Source: Octopus bimaculoides
Lineage: Eukaryota
Length of the DNA: 64,000 nt
Direction: 5' to 3'
Assembly (NCBI RefSeq): GCF_001194135.2
Contig: NC_068982.1
Span: 60,671,149 to 60,735,148 of the forward strand
The notes under the pieces were generated by a model. That model had not been told where the DNA came from. It worked only from the letters and a program-made list of their open reading frames with translations, and did no database searches. Shown piece by piece: positions 17,194-64,000 of the stretch (position 1 is the stretch's first letter; every line of letters starts with the position of its first letter). The position numbers were made by a program, and so were the translations under genes.

Positions 17194-20100
17194 NNNNNNN
17201 NNNNNNNNNNNNNNNNNNNNNNNNNNNNNNNNNNNNNNNNNNNNNNNNNNNNNNNNNNNNNNNNNNNNNNNNNNNNNNNNNNNNNNNNNNNNNNNNNNNN
17301 NNNNNNNNNNNNNNNNNNNNNNNNNNNNNNNNNNNNNNNNNNNNNNNNNNNNNNNNNNNNNNNNNNNNNNNNNNNNNNNNNNNNNNNNNNNNNNNNNNNN
17401 NNNNNNNNNNNNNNNNNNNNNNNNNNNNNNNNNNNNNNNNNNNTATATATATATATATATATATATATAGTTAATGGAAATTAACTAGAATATTGTAAAA
17501 GTAGATTAGCTTTTTCCTAATTCTTTTTCTTTTTTTATGGGAAACAACATTAACATGATCAATATATAAAAAAAAGTATTAATCTGAACAGTCTTTCATT
17601 TTCTCCATTTTTTTTTTTTTTTACCACCCACCCACCTTTTGCAGTTCAGTTAAAGCTAAGGATATTTATTAAATGAATTTGTTAAACATTACATCTCTGG
17701 GTTTGGATAACATGTAACTAAACTGTGGCTATGGTTGAGTGGTAGGTTATTTTATGAATGTTGATGTTTTATTGATAGTACTGGGTATATTATTGATTGA
17801 AGAGTATTGGGATTATGTACAAAATCAAATATTTTCTTTACCATGACTTTGATCAAAGCACCATTTGCTTACATTACAATATAATATCTGGCTTAGTTAC
17901 TCAGAGTGCCTTTGTTCACTGAAATGGTTAAGTTGTTTAAATTTAAATAGAGGACTTTCAATTACTTGTGTAAAGTGAAATATGGAGCTAATATAGTTGA
18001 AGTCAAAAATGTATGCAGACGAAAACTACTGAAATCATAGGAACCAGTCTAAGCTAGCTTGTTCTTTATCATTTTTACAACTTTGTCTTCTTCATTGTTG
18101 TCCTCTTTTGTTCAACTTCAAGCTAACTTAGGAATGGTATTCTCACTTTGAATACAGCCCACAATTGTGAACACATATTGATCCTCTGTTATATTGAATA
18201 GTGAACTGCTCTGCATGCATCAGTAGCAGGAGTATGTACATTCCTTTAGATCTATTTGTTGTTCAGGGCAGCACATGGTCATCCACGTCTTTTAGCAGTA
18301 GACAACCAAGCCACAAATAGCTCTTAAGTAGACTGCTTGAGAAGCAGGCATGTAAATGAAATGGCATTGTACACCTATGTTAGTATCACAATATAATGCT
18401 GACTGCATATTACAAACTTGCTTTTATTTTTAAGAGCTATTGACAAGTTTGATTTCATTCTTCTTGATATATATTAGTCAGGACCATCCAGAATTGCCGG
18501 CTTCTTCATGAGTATGTTTACTTCTTCAGATCATTGCTGTAGCTAGTTGGGGTCTTTTTGGGGTCATATTAAAACTCATTCATCCTGAAATATAAGTATA
18601 TTATGCATAGTAAATCTCTACATTGCGGAAATAGGTGCAGTATTTTCCTGACCAAAGAGAAGAGTGAAAGCAGTTGTTCTGAACTATCAAAGTCAAAATA
18701 CAATAATTATATCATAAAACCTTTGATAAATTCATGCGTCATAGCTCATAGAAAAACAGAAAGCTTCTGTTGAAAAATAAAACAATATGGCTATATTACA
18801 TTCCTTGCATTAGTAAAGAACTGCCGAAGGCAATAATTACCATTATAGTCAAAAGAATTTCATTGCAAACATGAATAACAATAATATAAAGTTTGTATTT
18901 GTCATGTAATTCATAACACAAGTGTTCTCAACAAATCTCTCTTCTTGTTAATATTAGTGTCTTCCTCTAAATATATTTCTCTATTTGTTAACAGCTTTCT
19001 TAATCCATAACATACATGCTACTTGGCTTTTTCTTTCTACTAAAGAAATATTTATAAGATATTCCGAATTTTCAGGTAAAAGCAATCGTAGTATTATTGT
19101 AGATGACAGAAAGCCTAAGATGTGTGTGTGTGTGTGTGTATACACACACACACAAACACACATATATATATGCACTTTACGTATATAGATATCTATATCA
19201 CATTTCTGAGTTTAAATCTCACCAGGGTCAACTGTGTATTTTATCTCTTATTTATATTACCCTGTTTTAAGTTTATCTCTTCATGCTAGCATTGTGGAAA
19301 GGCTTTTGTTACATTAACTGTTACAGCTAGATGCCTTTGCCTGCATTTCCCACCACTCATCTGTACAGGAGCAGAGCTTCTTCCTAGTGATAAACTGAGT
19401 GTGGTGAGGGGTGGGTAGACAATATAGTAGATGTAGGGAAATTTAAACATGCGACGATGTGGTCGGCAGTCCAGCCACCTTAACCTCACTGGCTTTGTAC
19501 CCAAAAAGTCAATAAAATAAATATAATTATTGCATTGAAGTTGAGTCAATCAACTATTCTCCTTCACTTTATGAAAAATATGTTTCACCAAAAAATCAAT
19601 ATCTCCATGCTGTAATACAAAGTAGATAACATTGTATGAGATCGGTAATTTATATAAACAGTAAGTAGAAAAACACAGGATAAATTTAATAACTTCTCAA
19701 ATCCATTTTAGATTTTAAAAGATACTAAACATAAATGAAATGAAACTTTTTAGGCACAAGCTATGCTATAGTAACAATGTTATAGTGTTAAACTTATGTT
19801 CTTATACTGATATCAAATCTTACCATACTTTCTTTGCCTTTCATCATACATTTTCACTCTCTTCAGCTATTATAAACATCATTAACTTCACTTCTATTTT
19901 CAGTGCTGACATAAGTTGTATAAGGTCTGTAATACATGACTTATCTCTATCATTTGCAGCTCCAACAAAGTATGTATCAGTTAAAAACAATGCTGTTGGT
20001 GGTAGTTTTAGTTATGTTGTATGTATTTCATGAGGTTTTTGGCATAGTTTTTTATTGCTGGATAGCCTCCCATCATTAATCTATACAATGGGGTGAACCA

Positions 20101-20871: not shown

Positions 20872-22783
20872 TGCGATTGCCTAAGCAAAATGAAACATCT
20901 GGAGGAGGTACCATGCCAAAATTTAAAACCCACGTAACCCACAAATCTGATAGGCTGATAATAGGCCAGAATGATTTCTAGCTTGAAACAGAAAGTATTA
21001 ATCAATGAAATATCTGCCTGAAGTATTTGTGCACCATCAAAATGATTATGACAACAATGATAATTTTAGTATCAAATTTTCCTAACAGTGTTTCTAAACA
21101 TTTTAATTTTATAGAAAACTTACATAAAACTTGGAGTACTTTTAAATCATGCAGCCTCCTTAATAGGTCAGTTGATTGATCCTTAAATTAATTAATAAAC
21201 TTAGTAGTTTTAAACTAGTTTGTTAATGTGCAATGGATTTCCATCAGCAGTATCAAGAAGCACCACCAGATTACCAAATGTAACAATGCTATCAACCTGT
21301 CTTGAATTAAACTAAAATCCTAAGAGAGTGTTATCTAAGATGCTACTTAGAGATCCTCTCTGCAATGACTAATATATTGAGAAAAAATATTTTTTTGAGA
21401 ATTAAAATACCTGTTTATTTGAAATACTGTCTTAATATGTATATTCTATAACTTTAAATTATAATCTTTATATACAAAGGAACAAAAAGCATAGTGGATA
21501 TATTTAAAGAGTGGAACTTGTTTTCAATTAATTCTATCATTCGATACCACTTTTATTATTCATTTAGTACAGTAATAGAAAAAGCTACCTGAATTTAAAA
21601 CAATAACCTTATAACTTTGAATGAAATTATTAAATAATTACTTGTCACGATTTGCTTTTGGAGAATAAATGAATTTAAATCATGCCTTGTGTAAATTTTA
21701 TCATATTCCCATAAAATATCAAAATTATTAGTTTCTAATTTGAAAATTCTATAAAATTTGTCATTGTTTAAAAAATGATTTAGAACTAATAATGAAAATT
21801 TGTACTTTTTATTGAATTAATATTTTGTTTTTCTTTAAATCTACTAATTGTTTTCAGTGATTATAGTTTAATGTACTTCTTCAAAATGTGATCTTTTTTT
21901 AAATATTGAACCTAAACAAAAAAGGAAAAGGTGTACATTCTCGTATGATTGTTTCAGGCAAAATGATAAGTTCTTATGTGTAATTCCTAAAGCCTAAGAG
22001 TTGTAGAGTTAAGGTGAATGAATGGAAGCTAGAACATTCATGCATTTATCAGTCACTTGTCTTATGAATAATACATACATATGTGCAACTGATTGTAAAT
22101 GAAAGTAGCTACCTTACTGCATTGTGGACTCAATATATGTATATATATGTATATACATTCATATATCTATATATGTTTGTGTGTGTATGCATGTATATAT
22201 GTGTGTGTGTATGCATGTATATATATATATATATATGAAATCTACAGCTTGATGAGGTAGCTGTGTTGCTTCATGTATTTGGAAATTTTCTTAGTTATGA
22301 AAATAAGGATGTAGTATAGCATATTAACATTCATTTATACCAACATAATCAGTTGTATCATAGCAGAATAATATTTTACATAGATGACTTCTGTTTCATT
22401 TATTAAGGTTATTCAAAACATTTATTATGTACAATGTTCTTCCAATACATTCCCCAATAATTTTGATAACATAGTAACACTAGAATGGCAAAGGGAAGGG
22501 AACCATTTTTTTGTTGTGGACAATTTGCATTTATCTCTTTCTAGATCACATCCACTTTTTGGTGTAGATGAAAATAATGAATAACAACTCTCAAAGCAGA
22601 AGTGATGACAAGTATAATAAAGAGTATAGTTTTCAAAAAAGTTCGCTTTTGAAACTGTATCTGACCACCTCAATGATCAAATACTTCATTAAAAAAATGC
22701 AATTTCAAAAGAAGTTAAGGAATTATATATTTCATAGTTATGAAAAACCATTGAATTTCCACAGGTACACCTAGTTTGTATCA

Positions 22784-23110: not shown

Positions 23111-24354
23111 GAAGAGAGGAGCTGTTTGGAAAATATAAAAATAGTGGAAATGGGTATGTAGAGGTTGCAAGAGTAAGACATGGGGAATGGGTGAAGGAGT
23201 GAATATAATGAATGAAGAACAAGTGTTGAAAGATAATAAATTGGCAAGGTAGGAAAGAGTAGGTGACAACTGTAGAGATTGGATAGGGGTGAGGAGTTGA
23301 TGTAGCAAATAATGGATAATGGAGGGAGCGGAATGTATGTGGGTGAAGAGCAGCAGAAACAATTCCCTTCATACATGAAATTAAGACTGTACTCTTATTA
23401 CTCTTTAGAATTTTATACAAAACTCAGATTGAGAATATTTTTACTGCACATTTCAGTAAATATTTACATTCCTCAATCAATTAAATTTCATCTTTTTTAT
23501 TACCTTTTTCTATTTTTACTCTTTTGTCTCTTGCTAAATATCAAGAAACAACTTGGGGTGATTTTCTTTAGTGTGAAAGTGTCTCAGCCCTCTTTTGCAT
23601 AATCTCCACTCCATTTAGTGTTGACACTGAACTTTGATGAGGTCATTCTTGGCTCTTTGTTTTCTTCAGCATTTATTTGGAACTCTAAACCAGATACAAT
23701 ATTTGTTAGCATTTCTTTCTATTGAGGTTTTACAAATTAATTCTATTTTTTCATTTTTTGTTATATTCCTCCTTTTTAATTTTAATATTTCTAGGAGTTT
23801 TTTGTTTTGTTTTTAATAGAGTTTTCTTGTTTTATAAAATCAATAACTTAGTCAATATAAAACTATGACTGATATTCATTCTATTCATAATTGCAAGGTA
23901 TTAAGAAAAATAACTTGAAAGAAATATTACCCTATTTTTAATATCTTTTTTTACTCTTTTATTTGAAAATTATAGATTCTATCATTAATATAAAATAAAA
24001 TATGCTAAGTTTTATTTCATTTTTGCTCATATACACACACAAACACATACTCACAAACATATACGCATCCTTATGCTCCAGTTTGTGTCTAAATTTTATA
24101 CAAAATATGAATAAAAACAAACAAAATTCCATGATTGTGCCATTTTCTAGATAAACTTAATGTACATGGTTATGATTTGGCATGAAAGCTATAATTAATA
24201 ATGTTTAAAATACTTATAATCTACCTACTTCAACATATAAATTACCACTTACTTTTCTCTATGTAAATTTGACAGGACTAAAAATTTGTATAAGAATTGC
24301 ATTTTATACTGTTGATATTTTATCGTTTCTACATTCAATATTTCTTTATTTCAG

Positions 24355-24381
24355 GATCAACTGAGTACCATAGGCGAAAAC
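24355..24381 (+). CDS. Candidate 27-nt symmetric microexon (DQLSTIGEN in phase 0), possibly an alternative BNC exon
   Basis: tttctttatttcAG|GATCAACTGAGTACCATAGGCGAAAAC|GTAAGT: strong acceptor, perfect GTAAGT donor, 9 codons, no stop in phase 0. No transcript evidence available. Confidence 0.4.
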
Positions 24382-25103
24382 GTAAGTTCATCCAAACTAG
24401 TCCAAAAGTTTGCATATATAATACATTAAAATGTAAAACTTTATATCAAGTTTATCTAGAATTGATAGGTTGTTTGGGATTAAAATAAGTTGGTTTCTTT
24501 TTTTTTTTTTAAAGAGAGATTACCTTTATATAAGATCTAGAGCATTCAGCACCTTTATCAAGATATAAACATGTGTGTGCATGTGTTGATTGTATATTTA
24601 TATGTATACATTATATGTGTATATACGTATGAGTATGTACATAATATATGTATATGTGTGGTGGGGTATACATACACGTATGTTCAAATGCTACTTTTGA
24701 TATAGCATTTTATTTCATAGTATTTTACCCTTCAGCAAACCTGAAATGTAGATATCACTACTTGCCCTTCACCATCGCTGTTTAGCGGCCTGGCTTTAGG
24801 TAAAACAATAAACAGGAATAATATTCAATCCAACAATATATGCACAAATAAACTTTTTTTTTTCTATTAGCCAACCTTACCTACTTTGTAAAAGCAGCTA
24901 TGCAGTGTATATGTGCATGTATGCACATCTACATGAATGTATGTGTGGGGTTTTTTTTTCTATTTTTATGGGAATTTCATGAATTGAAATAGTGTTTTTT
25001 ATTTTGGATTTTTTTTTTTTTTTGTAGCTAGTATATTGTTTTAATCATTAATTCTTGTAACAATATTTCTTTAGAAAAAATAACTTCAAACAATTTTTAC
25101 TTT

Positions 25104-25135
<32 letters not shown>

Positions 25136-25417
25136 NNNNNNNNNNNNNNNNNNNNNNNNNNNNNNNNNNNNNNNNNNNNNNNNNNNNNNNNNNNNNNNNN
25201 NNNNNNNNNNNNNNNNNNNNNNNNNNNNNNNNNNNNNNNNNNNNNNNNNNNNNNNNNNNNNNNNNNNNNNNNNNNNNNNNNNNNNNNNATGTATATAAAC
25301 ATTTTTGTATTTACATTTTGAAATTTCATCCTAAGAAAACAAATACTTGGATTTCTTAAGGAGTTGTTAATATTTACTAAACCATTCTTTTTTGTAATTT
25401 ACCCCATCACTAGCCTG

Positions 25418-26453: not shown

Positions 26454-26463
26454 NNNNNNNNNN

Positions 26464-27485: not shown

Positions 27486-27901
27486 NNNNNNNNNNNNNNN
27501 NNNNNNNNNNNNNNNNNNNNNNNNNNNNNNNNNNNNNNNNNNNNNNNNNNNNNNNNNNNNNNNNNNNNNNNNNNNNNNNNNNNNNNNNNNNNNNNNNNNN
27601 NNNNNNNNNNNNNNNNNNNNNNNNNNNNNNNNNNNNNNNNNNNNNNNNNNNNNNNNNNNNNNNNNNNNNNNNNNNNNNNNNNNNNNNNNNNNNNNNNNNN
27701 NNNNNNNNNNNNNNNNNNNNNNNNNNNNNNNNNNNNNNNNNNNNNNNNNNNNNNNNNNNNNNNNNNNNNNNNNNNNNNNNNNNNNNNNNNNNNNNNNNNN
27801 NNNNNNNNNNNNNNNNNNNNNNNNNNNNNNNNNNNNNNNNNNNNNNNNNNNNNNNNNNNNNNNNNNNNNNNNNNNNNNNNNNNNNNNNNNNNNNNNNNNN
27901 N
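27486..27901. other. Assembly gap (416 N), the largest of seven
   Basis: Other N-runs: 17194-17443, 25136-25288, 26454-26463, 38380-38525, 40069-40332, 59467-59516. Most abut (AT)n or (CA)n tracts. Confidence 0.99.
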
Positions 27902-27903
27902 TA

Positions 27904-28940
27904 TATTAGACTAAGCAACGTTTTGAAACATGAAATTCATTACAAGTTTGTTTATTCTGGTAACATAAAAATCTGGACTTCTGGAGCTAATGAACTCTTT
28001 GAATGCACTTTCAGCATCAGTTAGATTTTTGAACTCCTCTCGCAGGAAACCATCAAGGTGCTTGAAAAAGTGGTAGTCTGTAGGCAAAAGGTCTGGGGAA
28101 TAAGCTGGGTAGGGAAGAACTTCATAGCCAAGTTCCCTCAACTTCTGAAACATCATTAGGGAAACGTGTAGTTGAGCATTGTCATGAAGAATGATTGGCT
28201 CTCTTCTGTTGACCAGTCTGGGACAGAGGAGTAGCAGTTTTTCATTCATTTTGGCAATATGTTTCTGCAATAATGGTTGTTCCAGATTTTAAGAAGTTAC
28301 AGCAGATGAGTCCAGCAGTACACCACCAAACAGTCACCATAACTTTCTTTTTGATGAGCTCAGGTTTAGGGAAGGTTTTCAATGCTTCATTTTGGTCCAG
28401 CCACTGCAAAGAATGTTTTTTATTATTGCACAGAATCCACTTTTTATTGCAAGTTACAATACAGTCAAGAAATGGATCGGTTTGGTTACAGAGAAGTAGA
28501 GATGAGCAAATTTCATATCTGCACATTTTCTGATTTTCATTCAAATCGTGTGGTACCCATTTGTCGAGCCATTTTGATTTCCTGATCCCCTGCAAGTGAT
28601 CGCAGGCAGTTTTCTGGCTAACTTGAAGTTCTTTTGCCACTTCAAGTGGTTTTATGTGGATCTTTCTCAATGACGGTCTTTAATTGACCGTCATCAATGA
28701 CAGATATCACAAGCAGTTTCAGCTGCTTTATGTCCTTTTTTGAAATTGAATAGCAAAATTGCTCAAATATTGTGCTTCGACAGTTCCATTTCAGATTATT
28801 GTAACAACGGTGAAGAAAATATCAATGTTAATTTATTGAAGCATTTGGAAGTCAATAGCAAAAAACTTCAAAACTCTGTAAAAATCCAGTAAAAATTCTT
28901 CATTGTTCAAAACCTTTCTTACTTTATACTCAACCTAATA
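27904..28940 (-). mobile_element. Degenerate mariner transposon (Hsmar1/cecropia-subfamily-like), internally deleted
   Basis: Right end on the minus strand reads TA-TTAGGTTGAGTATAAAGTAAGAAAGGTTTTGAACAATG. The left end is a deleted version, TA-TTAG...TAAGCAACGTTTTGAAACATG. TA dinucleotides lie at both ends (27904-27905, 28939-28940). Confidence 0.93.
27911..28789 (-). pseudogene. Mariner DD34D transposase pseudogene
   Basis: From ATG at 28789: MELSKHNI*AILLFNFKKGHKAAETACDI, a deletion, then ...WVPHDLNENQK...FLDCIVTCNKKWIL...KKVMVTVWW..., a frameshift, then ...HDNAQLH...YSPDLLPTDYHFFKHLD. The first catalytic Asp is mutated (TCDEKW to TCNKKW). There are stops and frameshifts, and the C-terminal RWQKCV...YFD is missing. 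Confidence 0.95.
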
Positions 28941-28990: not shown

Positions 28991-29523
28991 GGAAAATAAG
29001 ACAAGGTAGAAAATACTAAAATAATTTGATCATGAAGTTCACTTTAGTACTAGTTTCCGTCTTTTAGACATTTTCAACTAAGAGTAAAATAAGAAAAACA
29101 ATTAAATTGGAGAAAAAAATTGAGTGAAATGTTTTGTAAATATTTTCATAATCTTCAAATAGTCTCTGTGTGTATGTGTGTGTGTGTCTCTCTCTCTCTC
29201 TCTCTCTTTTCCTTTGTGAATGATAGGTAGGTAGCTTGTAGTAAATCTGAAGGAATCCTTCAGATTTACTACTATCTACCTATCAAGCATTCAAAGGAAG
29301 AGACAGACAGACAGACAGACAGACTATTTGAAGACTATGGAAATATTTACTTATTTGAAGACTATGAAAATATTTACAAAACATTTCACTTAATTTTTTT
29401 TCTCCAATTTAATTGTTTTTCTTATTTTACTCTTAGTTGAAAAAGTCTAAAAGACAGAAACCAGTACTAAAATGAACTTCATGATAAAATTATTTTAGCA
29501 TTTTCTACTTTGTCTTATTTTCC
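28991..29523. repeat. 533-bp fold-back palindrome centred on 29255
   Basis: Perfect central GTAGTAAATCTGAAGGA-A-TCCTTCAGATTTACTAC; outer ~170-bp arms with about 10 differences; diverged microsatellites between. Confidence 0.96.
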
Positions 29524-37079: not shown

Positions 37080-39502
37080 CCTGCTCACCAACCTGCCTGC
37101 CTTGCCACTGGGGCGCATGCAAGAAAGCACATCGTGACCACCATTGTATAACAACATCTGATAGTCTGGTCGATACAGTAACACACACATATTCTTAATC
37201 ATATACCCTAACTATAATAATCATATGTCCTAATTATTTTAACTTCTATTACTCAACATTCAAACTAATAATATATAATTTTCTGTACTGCTGCTTGATT
37301 AGTAATTTGTCTTTCCATATTTAAAGCAATATGCCTCTATAATAATCTGTAAGTGACACTAATGCATCTGTTAGGCTTTTACTTTTATAATATGACTATT
37401 ACTAATACTACTACTATCTCTACAATTGATCTTATGTAAAGATTTTACTATAATTTCTGTAAGAGTATTTGTCTACTTATAAACTGTATTTATCAATATA
37501 TAACTTTGACAGCAGTGTTGATAGTAACACTGGCCTGCAAACTTGTATACTTAATTCTTTCTTACTTACGTATTGTCATTTCTTTATTTCCTATCATTTA
37601 TTCTTTTAATGTTCCTTTTTGCTTGTTAAATGATACTTATGGTATTCTTCACTGGTATTTATCACTCTGCTTCACCTCTTCCACTCGTTCTTACCTTTTG
37701 CGTTATTGGTTATGGTCAAGTAGTCACTGTCATCTACAAGAGAAACATTTCTTACAACACTTACATGCATGGTAAGATCAAAGAGTATTGATTCCTTCAC
37801 AAGCAGCTAACTTATTGGTTGTCTTTATCCAACACTCAGCCAGCATCACTACATTATATTCATACACATTAACAGAAACAAGGACATCCTTCTACATCAA
37901 AATGATGCTAATGATGACAACTAATGGAACAATTCCAAAATGACGATTCAGAACTATGTGAGAAAATACTTTTAATGTCACAGATTCTTTTTGCATGAGG
38001 TATTTTTTCCTAAAAGGCAATCTGTGTCACTGTCAGTAGCTAACTTTTTAGTGATTCTTTTCTTTCTCTTGATATCCTTAATTGTAGCTACTGGTTTTTC
38101 CTTTTAGGTGTATTTAGTTTCTATTAAAAAGATATTTTACAATTTTCTGTTTTTACTTTTTATTTTCTAACGTTCATTTTTTTTTTTTTCCTACCAGTTA
38201 TTATTTTTCCATCTTTCCATATTTCCCTTTCATTTTATTTTCTCCTCCTTCTTTCCCCTCTTCTCTAAATCTTCTTCCTCAGCCTCTTTTTCTTCACTTA
38301 TCTGTTTCTATTGTTTTAGAAAGAAAGATATTGGTGAGCTTTCCATATTTGACATGCTATAAAATATATACATACACACNNNNNNNNNNNNNNNNNNNNN
38401 NNNNNNNNNNNNNNNNNNNNNNNNNNNNNNNNNNNNNNNNNNNNNNNNNNNNNNNNNNNNNNNNNNNNNNNNNNNNNNNNNNNNNNNNNNNNNNNNNNNN
38501 NNNNNNNNNNNNNNNNNNNNNNNNNTATATTTCCTGTGTAGATCTCAAGAGAATAGAATGATTATGACTCAACATTCCGGTCTGATTGCAACTGACCATT
38601 ATGCTGAATCTCAGAACAACTGCATGCTCTTATGAGATTTACATTTTCTTGAACTGTTTAAGATAGAACGTTCTAGATTCCGGCAGTGTTTCCACTCACT
38701 GAGCAGGTGACGATGCTGCAAACGACAAGGGATAAATGTGCTGTGATAGGGATAGACTTTGATTTAATGCTGAAGTGGGATGGATTCTGACTGATCCTAA
38801 AGTTTTGTGCTGATCACAGAGGATAGAACATTAATGCACACAACCAAGATATTGGCACCAATTGACAAGTACATTGGAAATTAGAGAGTAGCACACAGCC
38901 CTGCCTTCATTCCACTGGCTATATTCAGCAACTGCTGTTTAGTGGATTACTATTAGCATTTGTCTTATAATGAAAAAGGCAACATATTATTGCTGTGGTT
39001 GCAGATTAAGTAGCACTAATTTAGCATTGCTGCAAGCTTAAATTTTCGTGCACATACCTGAGCAATAAACAGAGCTTTAATTTGAGGATTCATTTGCCCA
39101 TATAGAAACATGCCACTATATTTCCAATCTTCACTATTGAGTTTTTCTTATTCCAAATTATACTTGCCATATTTTGAGTTTTCAGATATTGGCATGTAAA
39201 TTCTTTCAATGACTTTTGTTAAAGTTCATTACAAGTTGCTTATAATTAGTTAAGGGTGCTTTGCATATCCACTCATCCATGAGACAAAGAGAATGAAAGC
39301 ACATTGTACTTGAAATGGATTTAAGTTCTGTCAGGAGTTAAGACTTTCTTTCTCTCTCACTCTCTCTCTCCAAATAAGTAAAGTAAAAGGAGAAAGAGAT
39401 TGATGAAAACACAAGAATTGAAGTCAATGCCCAGAATTATTTCTTATAAAGAAATCAAAGAAAGTTGTTTTAAGAATTATTTGGTAAATTTATGATTCTT
39501 TT

Positions 39503-39906: not shown

Positions 39907-40354
39907 GATGTAGAATATTTTAAACATTTTCAGTAATTTGTAAAATTTATCATATTATAAAAAAATATTCTATTTTCATCTTTCTGAATTAATTTTATTT
40001 ATTTTTTTCTAAATTATGCATTGAAAATTTAATCTGAATTATTTACTGTGAGAAACAAAGTTTCATTANNNNNNNNNNNNNNNNNNNNNNNNNNNNNNNN
40101 NNNNNNNNNNNNNNNNNNNNNNNNNNNNNNNNNNNNNNNNNNNNNNNNNNNNNNNNNNNNNNNNNNNNNNNNNNNNNNNNNNNNNNNNNNNNNNNNNNNN
40201 NNNNNNNNNNNNNNNNNNNNNNNNNNNNNNNNNNNNNNNNNNNNNNNNNNNNNNNNNNNNNNNNNNNNNNNNNNNNNNNNNNNNNNNNNNNNNNNNNNNN
40301 NNNNNNNNNNNNNNNNNNNNNNNNNNNNNNNNTATATATATATATATATATACA

Positions 40355-57700: not shown

Positions 57701-59824
57701 ATAAGTTGAAACAAATTAAAATTACAAAGGTCTAACTTTGCATCTTCATATTGATTATTATATTGATTTTGGTCACACCTTAAAATTTACAAACAAGAAA
57801 TTAATCACAGTAATCAAAACTTTGTGTCATCTGTTTGTTGAAGATAAATAGAAATCTTAATGTTTGATTTCAAACACTTCAATGCAAGTGTACTGTGAAG
57901 ACATTCTTTAATAGACCAGTGGTTACCATGTGTTGTGTATATTAATGAATTCATTAAGTGTAGCCAAAATTTTCTTTTAATGTCTCTTAGTTTTTTTTTT
58001 GTTCCCCCCCCCATAACATTCTTTTTCCTTTTGTTTTTTTTTCCTCCATATCTCAAATAGTCACATATGAATTGCAAAATTGTACAGACTTATGCAGATA
58101 TGTCTATAAAGTGTATGTGATTTTTTTTTTTTTTTTTTTTTTTTACACATAACCTCTCCACTTTTCTCTTCATTACCATTTTTGATTGGGATATAATGCT
58201 TATAATTAACCTGAATAAATCTGGACTCTTAGGGCTTGGCTGTAAATGATTCCCAGCTGTCCAGACTGGTCCAGAAATGACCGCCTTATGACTTGCTAGT
58301 TAATTGCATGTTGGGGTAAAAATTATTCAGGTATCATCTCGCTACTACTACTATTACTATTACTGTTGCTGCAGTCTGAGGTAAGTTCAGTGGACATGCC
58401 ACCAAGAACAATACTACAGCCTTACACATCCATACATTTGGTTGGAGATGGGGCAGTTTGTTTCCATTCAGCACATCTCCTTTCGGCTTTTGTCCAACCC
58501 AATGATAGTGAGATAATCAATAAGATGATGTGCTCTGCTCATGTAGTAGGAGTAATTTGGAGTCTTTTTTCATAATTGTATATAGCTAAAAGATGTTTGT
58601 ATTGATCACTTGTGGAAGTGGCTGTACAGAATGCACTGACTTAAATACAGTGCCAACATACCACTACAATAATCCATAGGCTGACCCCCCCCCCACACAC
58701 ACACACAGATACCGTTACCACCCCGCCCAACTAATCTTACACCCTCCTCTCTTCATTGAATTGTAGGATTGTTAACTAAGTGGCTTGGCACTGTCGAGAA
58801 ATTACAAAGAGGAAATTTTCATGCAAGCCAATTACTGGTCCCATGGACTCAGATTTTGGGAAACATCAAAAACAAAGTAGTGGTGTGTGTGTGTGTGTGT
58901 AAGCTTGCAGTCATCTGTACACTTTCTAAAAGTTGGGGCAAGTAGTATATTATTAAATGAGTAGAAGTAGTAGTTGTAGTAGTTTGTCTCTTATACTTTT
59001 CCTATGTATCTTTTCATTTACTTACCTTACTTTTTACCTTAAGAAAGGTAAATATAATTAGCTACAGCTATTTAACTATCTATTTTCCTGAAGCTCACTG
59101 TTATATAGATAGATAATATTTATATATTACATTTATATTATATATATATATATGCATAGCTTTGATGAAGCAAACAGGAAAATAGAACTCAAAACACGAG
59201 TATACACATGTTTTTTTTTTATTAATAATTGGCAGAAATTACAGAATGGCTTGAGAGCCAATGGACAAACCTCTTGGCCCTTGAGTCACTCTGTAACATC
59301 TGCTACTTCAGTACCAGTTGAAGACTGGGGTCAATATAATCAACTAGCCCCCTTCCCCATAAAATTTAGGCTCTGTGCTTATTGAAGAAAGAATTATATT
59401 TATATATGTATATTTTATGCAATTCATACGTATTTATGTATGTACATACATGTGTATATATATGTANNNNNNNNNNNNNNNNNNNNNNNNNNNNNNNNNN
59501 NNNNNNNNNNNNNNNNACACACACACACACACATATATATATATGCTCTTATTGCCCTCTTCCTCACAGCTTCTCTGTCACCTCAATATTCCCTTATTCT
59601 TTTTCCTTTTCCCTATTAACGCCCCCCCCCCCACCTGTCTCTCTTCCAATGACTCTTTCTGGTTCCTCTCTCCAATCATTTATATTTCTTGTTCATGTTC
59701 CCTTCTAGCACACCTGCGCAAACTCACTCTTGTAATGCGGGATAGCCCTGGACCCTCTCTTCTCAATCGGACTTCACCTAGAATCATCAGTCCCTCTCTT
59801 CTATTCTCCATCAGTTATGGAGGT

Positions 59825-62455: not shown

Positions 62456-64000
62456 GATGCATCTGGCCGAGTTTTAGATAAATGGACCATTGCCACTCGG
62501 GAAGAGGAACATATAATATTACAACAGTTTCTCCGATTTGGAGAAACAAAATCTATTGCTCAGGAAATCATTCTTCAGGATACTAAAGAGAAACAAGAGC
62601 TTTATGTCAAGCAAACTTCTCGGGCTGAGTCTGAAATCAAGAAATTCATTGAGAGGAGTAACCTAAGTATGCAAAGCTACATGCGTCCCTACGAATCACG
62701 GCATCTGTTCTCAAATCGCATGCCATTCGTATCCCACAGTAGTAACCGCCTTGTAGCACCGACTGCAATACAGTATACTGCCACTACACCCCCACGGGAT
62801 TTACGCCCCACAAGTATGCCTCCCACTCCTGTACCTACATCGAGTCCTGTTACCTCGTCCCCATTAGGCCGTCTGCAAACCATGTTGCCCATTGATTTTC
62901 GAAGGGAACGCTTAAGTCCTGCTGTTAGCCCAGGACTATCAGAAAAACGTGCCTCTGTGCCACAGCTATCACAACCACCTCTGCCACCACCACCACCACC
63001 ACTACCTTCCCACGGTGATGAAAGTCCCAAAAATCTGAGTACTACCCCAACACCAACACCAACATCCACAAGTCCTCCCCAGTTCCAGTCAATGAAACCG
63101 CCAGATATAATTGAAAATTCTAAACATGCGCCATGCATAAATATGCCAAATATTAGCCCAGTCATTATCTCCCAAGAAGATTCACCTATGAATGCAATAA
63201 ATTATTCTACCAAAGACTGTGAAGAATCAGCACTGTCTGTGTATGCAGATCGCAAAGTAAAACACCTCCGAAAGTCGGCTAATCCAATCAAACGTCAATG
63301 GACTCCTTCGGCATCATTTGGAAGTACACTGATTGCACCCAACGGCAAAAAGCGTGTTCTTTGCACAGCTTGCAATAAAACTTTCTGTGATAAAGGTGCT
63401 CTTAAAATTCATTACAGTGCAGTACATCTGAAAGAGATGCACAAATGTACAGTTGAAGGCTGCAGTATGATGTTCAGTTCTCGTCGCAGTCGTAATCGCC
63501 ACAGTGCCAACCCTAACCCTAAGCTCCACATGCCTCAAAAACGCAAACTCCCAGAAGGAGCTACTTTAGTAGCTGAGTCCAAACTCCCTTCGAGGCTCAT
63601 TAATTCTCCTCCTACCATGGTCGTTACTTCATCTTATCTCTCTAGAGCAGTGATTCCCTCACTCGATTCAAATGTCCTCAACAGGAGTGATCAGTCATGC
63701 TTTGTAGATGTGGGAAACAGCCTTTCATATATGTCTTCTGGGAAAAAAATAAAAATGGAAAATAACGATGGAAGTAATGAAGCCATTGATATGACTGATG
63801 ATGTGAAGTCGCTGGACGATACATTGAAACCAGATGTAAGCAGCACACAGCGTGGCTTCAACAGAAGGAAAAGCTTGATTCCTACCCGTTGTGCCCAGAT
63901 GGAAGAAAATTACAGCATGAGTGATGAAAATTCAATCTCAGATGAGAAAGATGCAACTAAACACAACAAGAAATGCTTAAATGATGCTGAGAATGTAAAA
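62456..64000 (+). CDS. BNC: Large internal coding exon (phase 0, 515 codons, open to window end) of a basonuclin/disconnected-family C2H2 zinc-finger transcription factor
   Basis: Stop-free frame from 62456 reads DASGRVLDKWTIATREEEHIILQQFLRFGETKSIAQE..., matching the conserved BNC1/BNC2 block (DASGKVLDHW...LQQFLRFGETKSIVE). It later reads GKKRVLCTACNKTFCDKGALKIHYSAVHLKEMHKCTVEGCSMMFSSRRSRNRHSANPNPKLH, the diagnostic BNC/disco finger pair. A canonical acceptor precedes it. BNC1 vs BNC2 vs disco orthology cannot be resolved here. Confidence 0.97.
62984..63064 (+). repeat. Coding low-complexity repeats: (CCA)6 polyproline and CCA-ACA PTPTPT
   Basis: ctg(cca)6cta encodes LPPPPPPL; ccaacaccaacaccaaca encodes PTPTPT. 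Confidence 0.9.
63362..63529 (+). other. First C2H2 zinc-finger pair of basonuclin/disco (finger 2 has the family-typical HSANPNPKLH ending)
   Basis: Translation CTACNKTFCDKGALKIHYSAVH-LKEMHK-CTVEGCSMMFSSRRSRNRHSANPNPKLH. Confidence 0.96.

Follow-up and report, generated by a model that had tools for sequence, protein, structure and literature searches.

It is very probable that the window, the 64,000-nt stretch of Octopus bimaculoides DNA analysed here, holds intron sequence and a large exon of a single zinc-finger gene of the basonuclin/disconnected family, and that positions 24355–24381 of its forward strand form a genuine 27-nt cassette microexon of this gene, which can be included or skipped. 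The evidence comes from annotated isoforms of octopods and from RNA contigs of a decapodiform, in which the same short exon is found both spliced in and left out.

Host gene and splice signals

The large exon begins at position 62456 and runs to the end of the window at 64000, continuing past it. It is constitutive and in phase 0, and its translation opens with DASGRVLDKW and extends through the first zinc-finger pair. In blastn the decapodiform transcript L001 matches the window from 62453, the exon proper starting at 62456, and the translation of the exon is contained at 100% in two protein models of the window genome, P0242 and P0246. The preceding exon, which ends in GYILQ, lies outside the window: tblastn with the N-terminal 125 residues gives no match within it, and GYILQ occurs in none of its forward frames. 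Since the window holds no upstream basonuclin exon, positions 1–62455 are all intron around the microexon, which divides them into an upstream intron (1–24354) and a downstream intron of ~38 kb (24382–62455) leading to the large exon. The gene model P0242, on assembly GCA_001194135.2, spans 202.6 kb, and the basonuclin gene of Argonauta spans 177.5 kb.

The host gene belongs to the basonuclin/disconnected family, as its product contains the N-terminal blocks AIRCT...CxCECF...HGWV...LKILLDRLFSVL...GYILQ...VLDKW...QQFLRFGET together with paired C2H2 zinc fingers. The N-terminal blocks are invariant columns in an alignment of 117 family members. Pfam returns zf-C2H2 matches only, the N-terminal domain being without a Pfam model, and the source databases name these proteins basonuclin-2-like.

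The window is AT-rich, with a G+C content of ~29%, and simple repeats are abundant in the intron. Seven runs of N mark assembly gaps (17194–17443, 25136–25288, 26454–26463, 27486–27901, 38380–38525, 40069–40332 and 59467–59516), and these are mostly flanked by microsatellites of the (TA)n, (CA)n or (TATG)n type. The 416-nt gap at 27486–27901 adjoins a mariner-type transposase relic on the reverse strand (27911–28670), which consists of two adjoining ORFs, one of them matching Pfam Transposase_1 (PF01359, E 6e-19). Further downstream within the intron, the arms of a 129-nt inverted repeat (28991–29119 and 29395–29523) are 95% complementary and 275 nt apart; the repeat encloses shorter nested inverted repeats and has a foldback or MITE-like appearance.

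The microexon itself reads GATCAACTGAGTACCATAGGCGAAAAC, nine codons without a stop that encode DQLSTIGEN. It is preceded by cattcaatatttctttatttcag, with a pyrimidine-rich acceptor ending in ttcag, and followed by gtaagt. Its length of 27 nt, phase 0 on both sides and canonical AG/GT sites are those of a frame-preserving microexon (27 nt or less). From 24295 to 24352 the sequence is free of AG dinucleotides, which gives the acceptor a 58-nt AG-free zone. Within it lies a candidate branch point of the YTRAY type, TTGAT, at 24312–24316, 43 nt upstream of the exon. Together with a pyrimidine tract (15 of 20 positions) and the cag acceptor, these elements make up a region (24295–24354) that probably functions as the 3' splice site, judging by its match to the splice-site consensus and by where the exon boundary falls in transcripts. 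The 5' splice site, GTAAGT at 24382–24387, follows an exon end that coincides with a transcript junction. The original prediction, made from the window sequence, had described the open frame of 27 nt, its splice signals, phase 0, the peptide and a TTGAT about 40 nt upstream, and all of these statements are confirmed.

No second copy of the 27-mer occurs in the window, even when three mismatches are allowed, and neither the nearby inverted repeats nor the mariner relic overlaps it; the microexon does not appear to lie in a repeat or transposon. Its donor is one of only nine sense-strand GTAAGT hexamers in the 62.4-kb intronic stretch. On the antisense strand of positions 1–62455 the hexamer occurs 22 times, a difference which is only marginal once the skew of G below C is allowed for. 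This sense-strand deficit might be the outcome of selection that keeps cryptic donors out of so long an intron.

Isoforms in octopods and in a decapodiform

The cephalopod basonuclin proteins came from a protein search, first using the downstream exon and next a longer query, and the members of the top cluster were compared. Among the models of the window genome (GCA_001194135.2), P0242 (1076 aa) and P0247 read ...YEDYARGYILQDQLSTIGENDASGRVLDKW..., while P0246 (1067 aa) reads ...GYILQDASGRV... with no insert. In Octopus sinensis, DQLSTIGEN is present in the RefSeq isoforms X1 (XP_029658427.1) and X3 (XP_029658428.1 and others) and missing from X2 (XP_036356253.1). In both species the isoforms differ solely by these nine residues at the predicted junction (P0242 and P0247 versus P0246; X1 and X3 versus X2), and the insert peptide is unchanged between them. 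The O. sinensis isoforms X1 and X3 show 99% protein identity to P0242 and carry the insert at the same GYILQ/DASGRV junction, although they come from another species than the window and were compared at the protein level. Argonauta hians (GAB1604920.1) has DQLSTIGET at this junction, while both models of Octopus vulgaris are without the insert. The insertion falls exactly between GYILQ and DASGRVLDKW in P0242, P0243, P0244, P0241 and P0248. For the window species, use of the microexon is thus indicated by deposited gene models.

At the N-terminus the octopod isoforms come in two versions, MKPLEAIRC... in P0242 and P0244 and MVSSGNIIGRK...FLKISKAIRC... in P0121 and P0243. This difference suggests that first exons or promoters are used alternatively, a feature also reported for vertebrate BNC2.

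Splicing of the exon is seen directly in RNA of a decapodiform. Logan assemblies from the runs of one project contain basonuclin contigs of 2.0 to 3.7 kb, which represent spliced transcripts, since the basonuclin reading frame is uninterrupted in each. The source is identified as a decapodiform by its protein, whose identity is 93.8% to an Acanthosepion-like protein and 82.6% to the protein of the window. Contigs from four runs, SRR27666075, -65, -62 and -61, include the exon and read ...ctccag-GATCAACTGAGTACCCTAGGCGAAAAC-GAAGCC... (L002, L003, L009 and L010), while those from three others, SRR27666064, -87 and -73, skip it precisely and join ctccag straight to GAAGCC (L001, L004 and L005). 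Both contig forms occur among the decapodiform runs, and the exon is therefore a true cassette, used and skipped. The boundaries of the microexon in the window coincide with the decapodiform transcript junctions. One Logan contig, SRR27666073_5610, is frameshifted (at about 1777–1801 of L001) when compared with the remaining decapodiform transcripts, and from there its reading carries on in a different frame; an assembly error is the probable cause. No paper citing the runs SRR27666061-87 came up in the literature search.

The original prediction had placed an insertion between GYILQ and DASGRVLDKW, and this position is exact in the isoform proteins, the RNA contigs bearing out a real cassette that preserves the frame. 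Its suggestion of an undescribed isoform of cephalopod basonuclin was mistaken, because the inclusion isoform already stands in the public annotation of the window genome (P0242, P0247) and of two other octopods (XP_029658427.1, XP_029658428.1 and GAB1604920.1). The microexon isoform is already known in the sense that it is present in public gene models; the literature search returned no paper on basonuclin microexons and none on cephalopod basonuclin.

Conservation and rival explanations

The decapodiform exon is identical to the window microexon at 26 of 27 nucleotides, the one change, ATA to CTA, replacing Ile with Leu. The adjacent large exon has a nucleotide identity of 80.1% over 1535 nt between the window and L001, and at this rate at least 26 matches in 27 would be expected with P ~0.02. 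Third codon positions are identical at all nine sites of the microexon, but at only 58% of sites in the 88 codons that follow it (P ~0.007), although 85 of the 88 residues there are the same. As neighbouring third positions match so much less often, the nucleotides of the microexon are constrained beyond their coding function. The microexon is conserved across coleoid cephalopods at almost every nucleotide, synonymous sites included, according to these alignments. The perfect conservation of synonymous sites suggests that its sequence also carries splicing signals by which an exon of this small size can be recognised in a gene of ~200 kb. The original prediction had proposed a search of cephalopod transcripts and a comparison of the exon across cephalopods, and both return it: the former yields the nearly identical exon in decapodiform RNA, and the latter the excess of conservation over the next exon together with DQLSTIGET in Argonauta.

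The microexon is absent from the Acanthosepion pharaonis locus L006 and from the ENA contig L007, which reach no further than 10 kb upstream of the large exon. A protein search with six concatenated stop-to-stop ORFs from around the microexon, aimed at cephalopod genomic contigs, gave no match.

How often such a signal arises by accident was estimated from simulated introns, generated by Markov chains of first and third order. Under criteria fitted to the microexon (a GTAAGT donor, a length of at most 27 nt that is a multiple of three, an open frame and at least 15 pyrimidines in 20 positions), ~0.1 candidates are expected per 62 kb, and slightly looser criteria raise this to 0.3 to 0.9. Taken by its sequence alone the microexon signal is within chance expectation; what proves the exon is evidence external to the window. 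Given these expectations, the original prediction was fair in warning that one such candidate in 62 kb could be due to chance. The same scan also returns a second candidate on the forward strand, the 6-nt ctgcag/TCTGAG/gtaagt at 58375–58380, which is in frame. This one is probably a chance match, since the corresponding 2-residue insert is absent from all cephalopod isoforms examined.

The microexon could in principle be an accident of the same kind, a pairing of AG with GTAAGT around an open frame in an AT-rich intron that is never spliced in, and both the expected number of candidates and the unused second one are what this explanation would lead one to anticipate. However, its peptide stands at exactly GYILQ/DASGRV in annotated isoforms from three octopod species, and an exon with 26 of 27 nucleotides identical is spliced into decapodiform transcripts, a conservation beyond chance. 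The octopod isoform proteins and the decapodiform RNA contigs refute a chance pseudo-exon, which is rejected as extremely improbable. That splice signals were sufficient for a reader without tools to find a true 27-nt exon, 38 kb away from the nearest exon, provides a calibration point for such readings. Another explanation accepts the exon as real in cephalopods and holds that the inclusion model of the window species is a carry-over by homology or an ab initio prediction, the exon being rarely or never used there. The O. vulgaris models, which are without the exon, agree with this. Against it, of three models of the window genome that differ in source, two include the exon (P0242, P0247) and one excludes it (P0246), the splice signals of the exon are intact, its coding sequence is the same as in O. 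sinensis, and its retention across the octopod-decapod split argues for continued use. Rare use or disuse in the window species is accordingly considered quite improbable, and a cassette microexon used in both lineages is the preferred reading.

Many bilaterian microexons of 27 nt or less are neural and depend on Srrm4/eMIC. The octopus exon resembles this class in its length, which is a multiple of three, in its alternative use, in its extreme nucleotide conservation and in its insertion into a conserved domain, and by analogy with this general profile it may be a neural-enriched microexon whose inclusion requires the Srrm234 eMIC domain. Such a reading would refine the cassette reading and does not compete with it, and it is put forward tentatively, as possible and not as the expected outcome. 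The coexistence of both isoforms across the runs of one project is consistent with it. Microexons of the Srrm3/4 (eMIC) programme are expected to have a UGC motif shortly upstream of the 3' splice site, beside the pyrimidine tract. The octopus exon has no UGC close to its acceptor: the nearest upstream UGC is at -57 (24298–24300), with none between -56 and the AG, and within 300 nt TGCATG occurs once, at +197, in a TG-rich repeat. The position of the UGC argues neither way. The motif rules were drawn up for vertebrates and may not hold in cephalopods. In the literature search no paper connected basonuclin with a microexon programme, the one hit having no more than the words in common, and neither basonuclin nor BNC is mentioned in a 2026 comparison of splicing across species, O. 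bimaculoides among them (bioRxiv 10.64898/2026.09.05.749416).

The GYILQ/D junction and the N-terminal domain

The junction that receives the octopus insert is also variable in other lophotrochozoans. In basonuclin-2 of Lingula anatina, isoform X1 has a 15-residue insert at GYILQ/D, while X2 has none. Reading of the DNA shows that this insert is a separate 45-nt cassette exon, PIQPSTDAGLSQIPI, at 22743–22787 of L008 (LFEI02000748.1), bounded by ttcag and gtgagt and located in the homologous 1-kb phase-0 intron between GYILQ and D-x-x-G-x-VLDKW. The Lingula exon is thus like the octopus microexon in lying in the same phase-0 intron, in being an alternative cassette and in having canonical cag and gtgagt sites, and the two have a common in-frame core, TCAAC..AGTAC (Q-x-S-T). 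However, they differ in length, 45 versus 27 nt, and their overall similarity is weak, with P 0.02–0.04 for the local score and a total number of matches that is not significant. Homology of the two exons is weakly suggested by this sequence comparison, and a common origin is possible.

Isoform pairs with shorter inserts at the same junction are found in Haliotis (VGQ, P0125/P0264), Mytilus trossulus (VKK, P0287/P0293), Mya (VQ, P0137/P0303) and Ostrea (VNNS, P0141/P0308). As all four begin with V, encoded by GTN, these inserts would be explained by read-through to a downstream alternative donor. The chiton Liolophura has an insert of 48 residues (TSSSGK...NYQNKE) at GYILQ/D. No insert at this junction is present in the arthropod, vertebrate or amphioxus sequences that were aligned. 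A second variable site of the N-terminal domain is HGWVAHA/LDKLG, which contains IQSDAYA in Mercenaria (P0299 and P0300, versus P0301), a long insert in Ostrea X1 (P0306) and GVS in the onychophoran Euperipatoides (P0146).

The exons of cephalopods and Lingula may descend from one alternative exon of a lophotrochozoan ancestor; together with the V-inserts of Haliotis, Mytilus, Mya and Ostrea they would then mark an ancient N-terminal loop of tunable length, which in cephalopods might have come under eMIC or neural control. This scenario is speculative and regarded as rather unlikely.

Among vertebrates, BNC2 belongs to the same family and is credited with six promoters and a large number of alternative splice sites (Vanhoutteghem and Djian 2007, cited in PMC13304701). 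As far as that citation goes, extensive use of alternative first exons and splicing in BNC2 is paralleled by the two N-termini of the octopus protein, while the GYILQ/D insert of octopus basonuclin has no counterpart among the aligned vertebrate sequences.

Inclusion of the microexon adds nine polar or acidic residues between the invariant ...YEDYARGYILQ and DASGRVLDKW... segments of the N-terminal domain and leaves the frame unchanged. AlphaFold modelling of the skipping isoform gave a mean pLDDT of 56, fit for local secondary structure only; here the Q119/D120 junction is located in a turn between helices 109–118 and 134–146, with a local pLDDT of ~62–71 and values of 62–76 around the site. 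The model of the N-terminal domain with the insert (mean pLDDT 46, ~35 over the insert) is too poor to interpret. From the skipping model, the insert is predicted to lengthen a surface turn or loop between two helices, and so might tune an interaction surface of the N-terminal domain. A Foldseek search of the PDB with the N-terminal domain model gave no match with E below 0.8, and a profile search of PDB sequences with this domain returned no solved relative.

Isoform-specific functions of BNC2 remain undefined (review PMC13304701). Between octopuses and decapods the exon has hardly changed, synonymous sites included, and the domain that holds it is the most conserved of the family and functionally uncharacterised; for this reason the two isoforms offer a natural handle for asking what the N-terminal domain binds.
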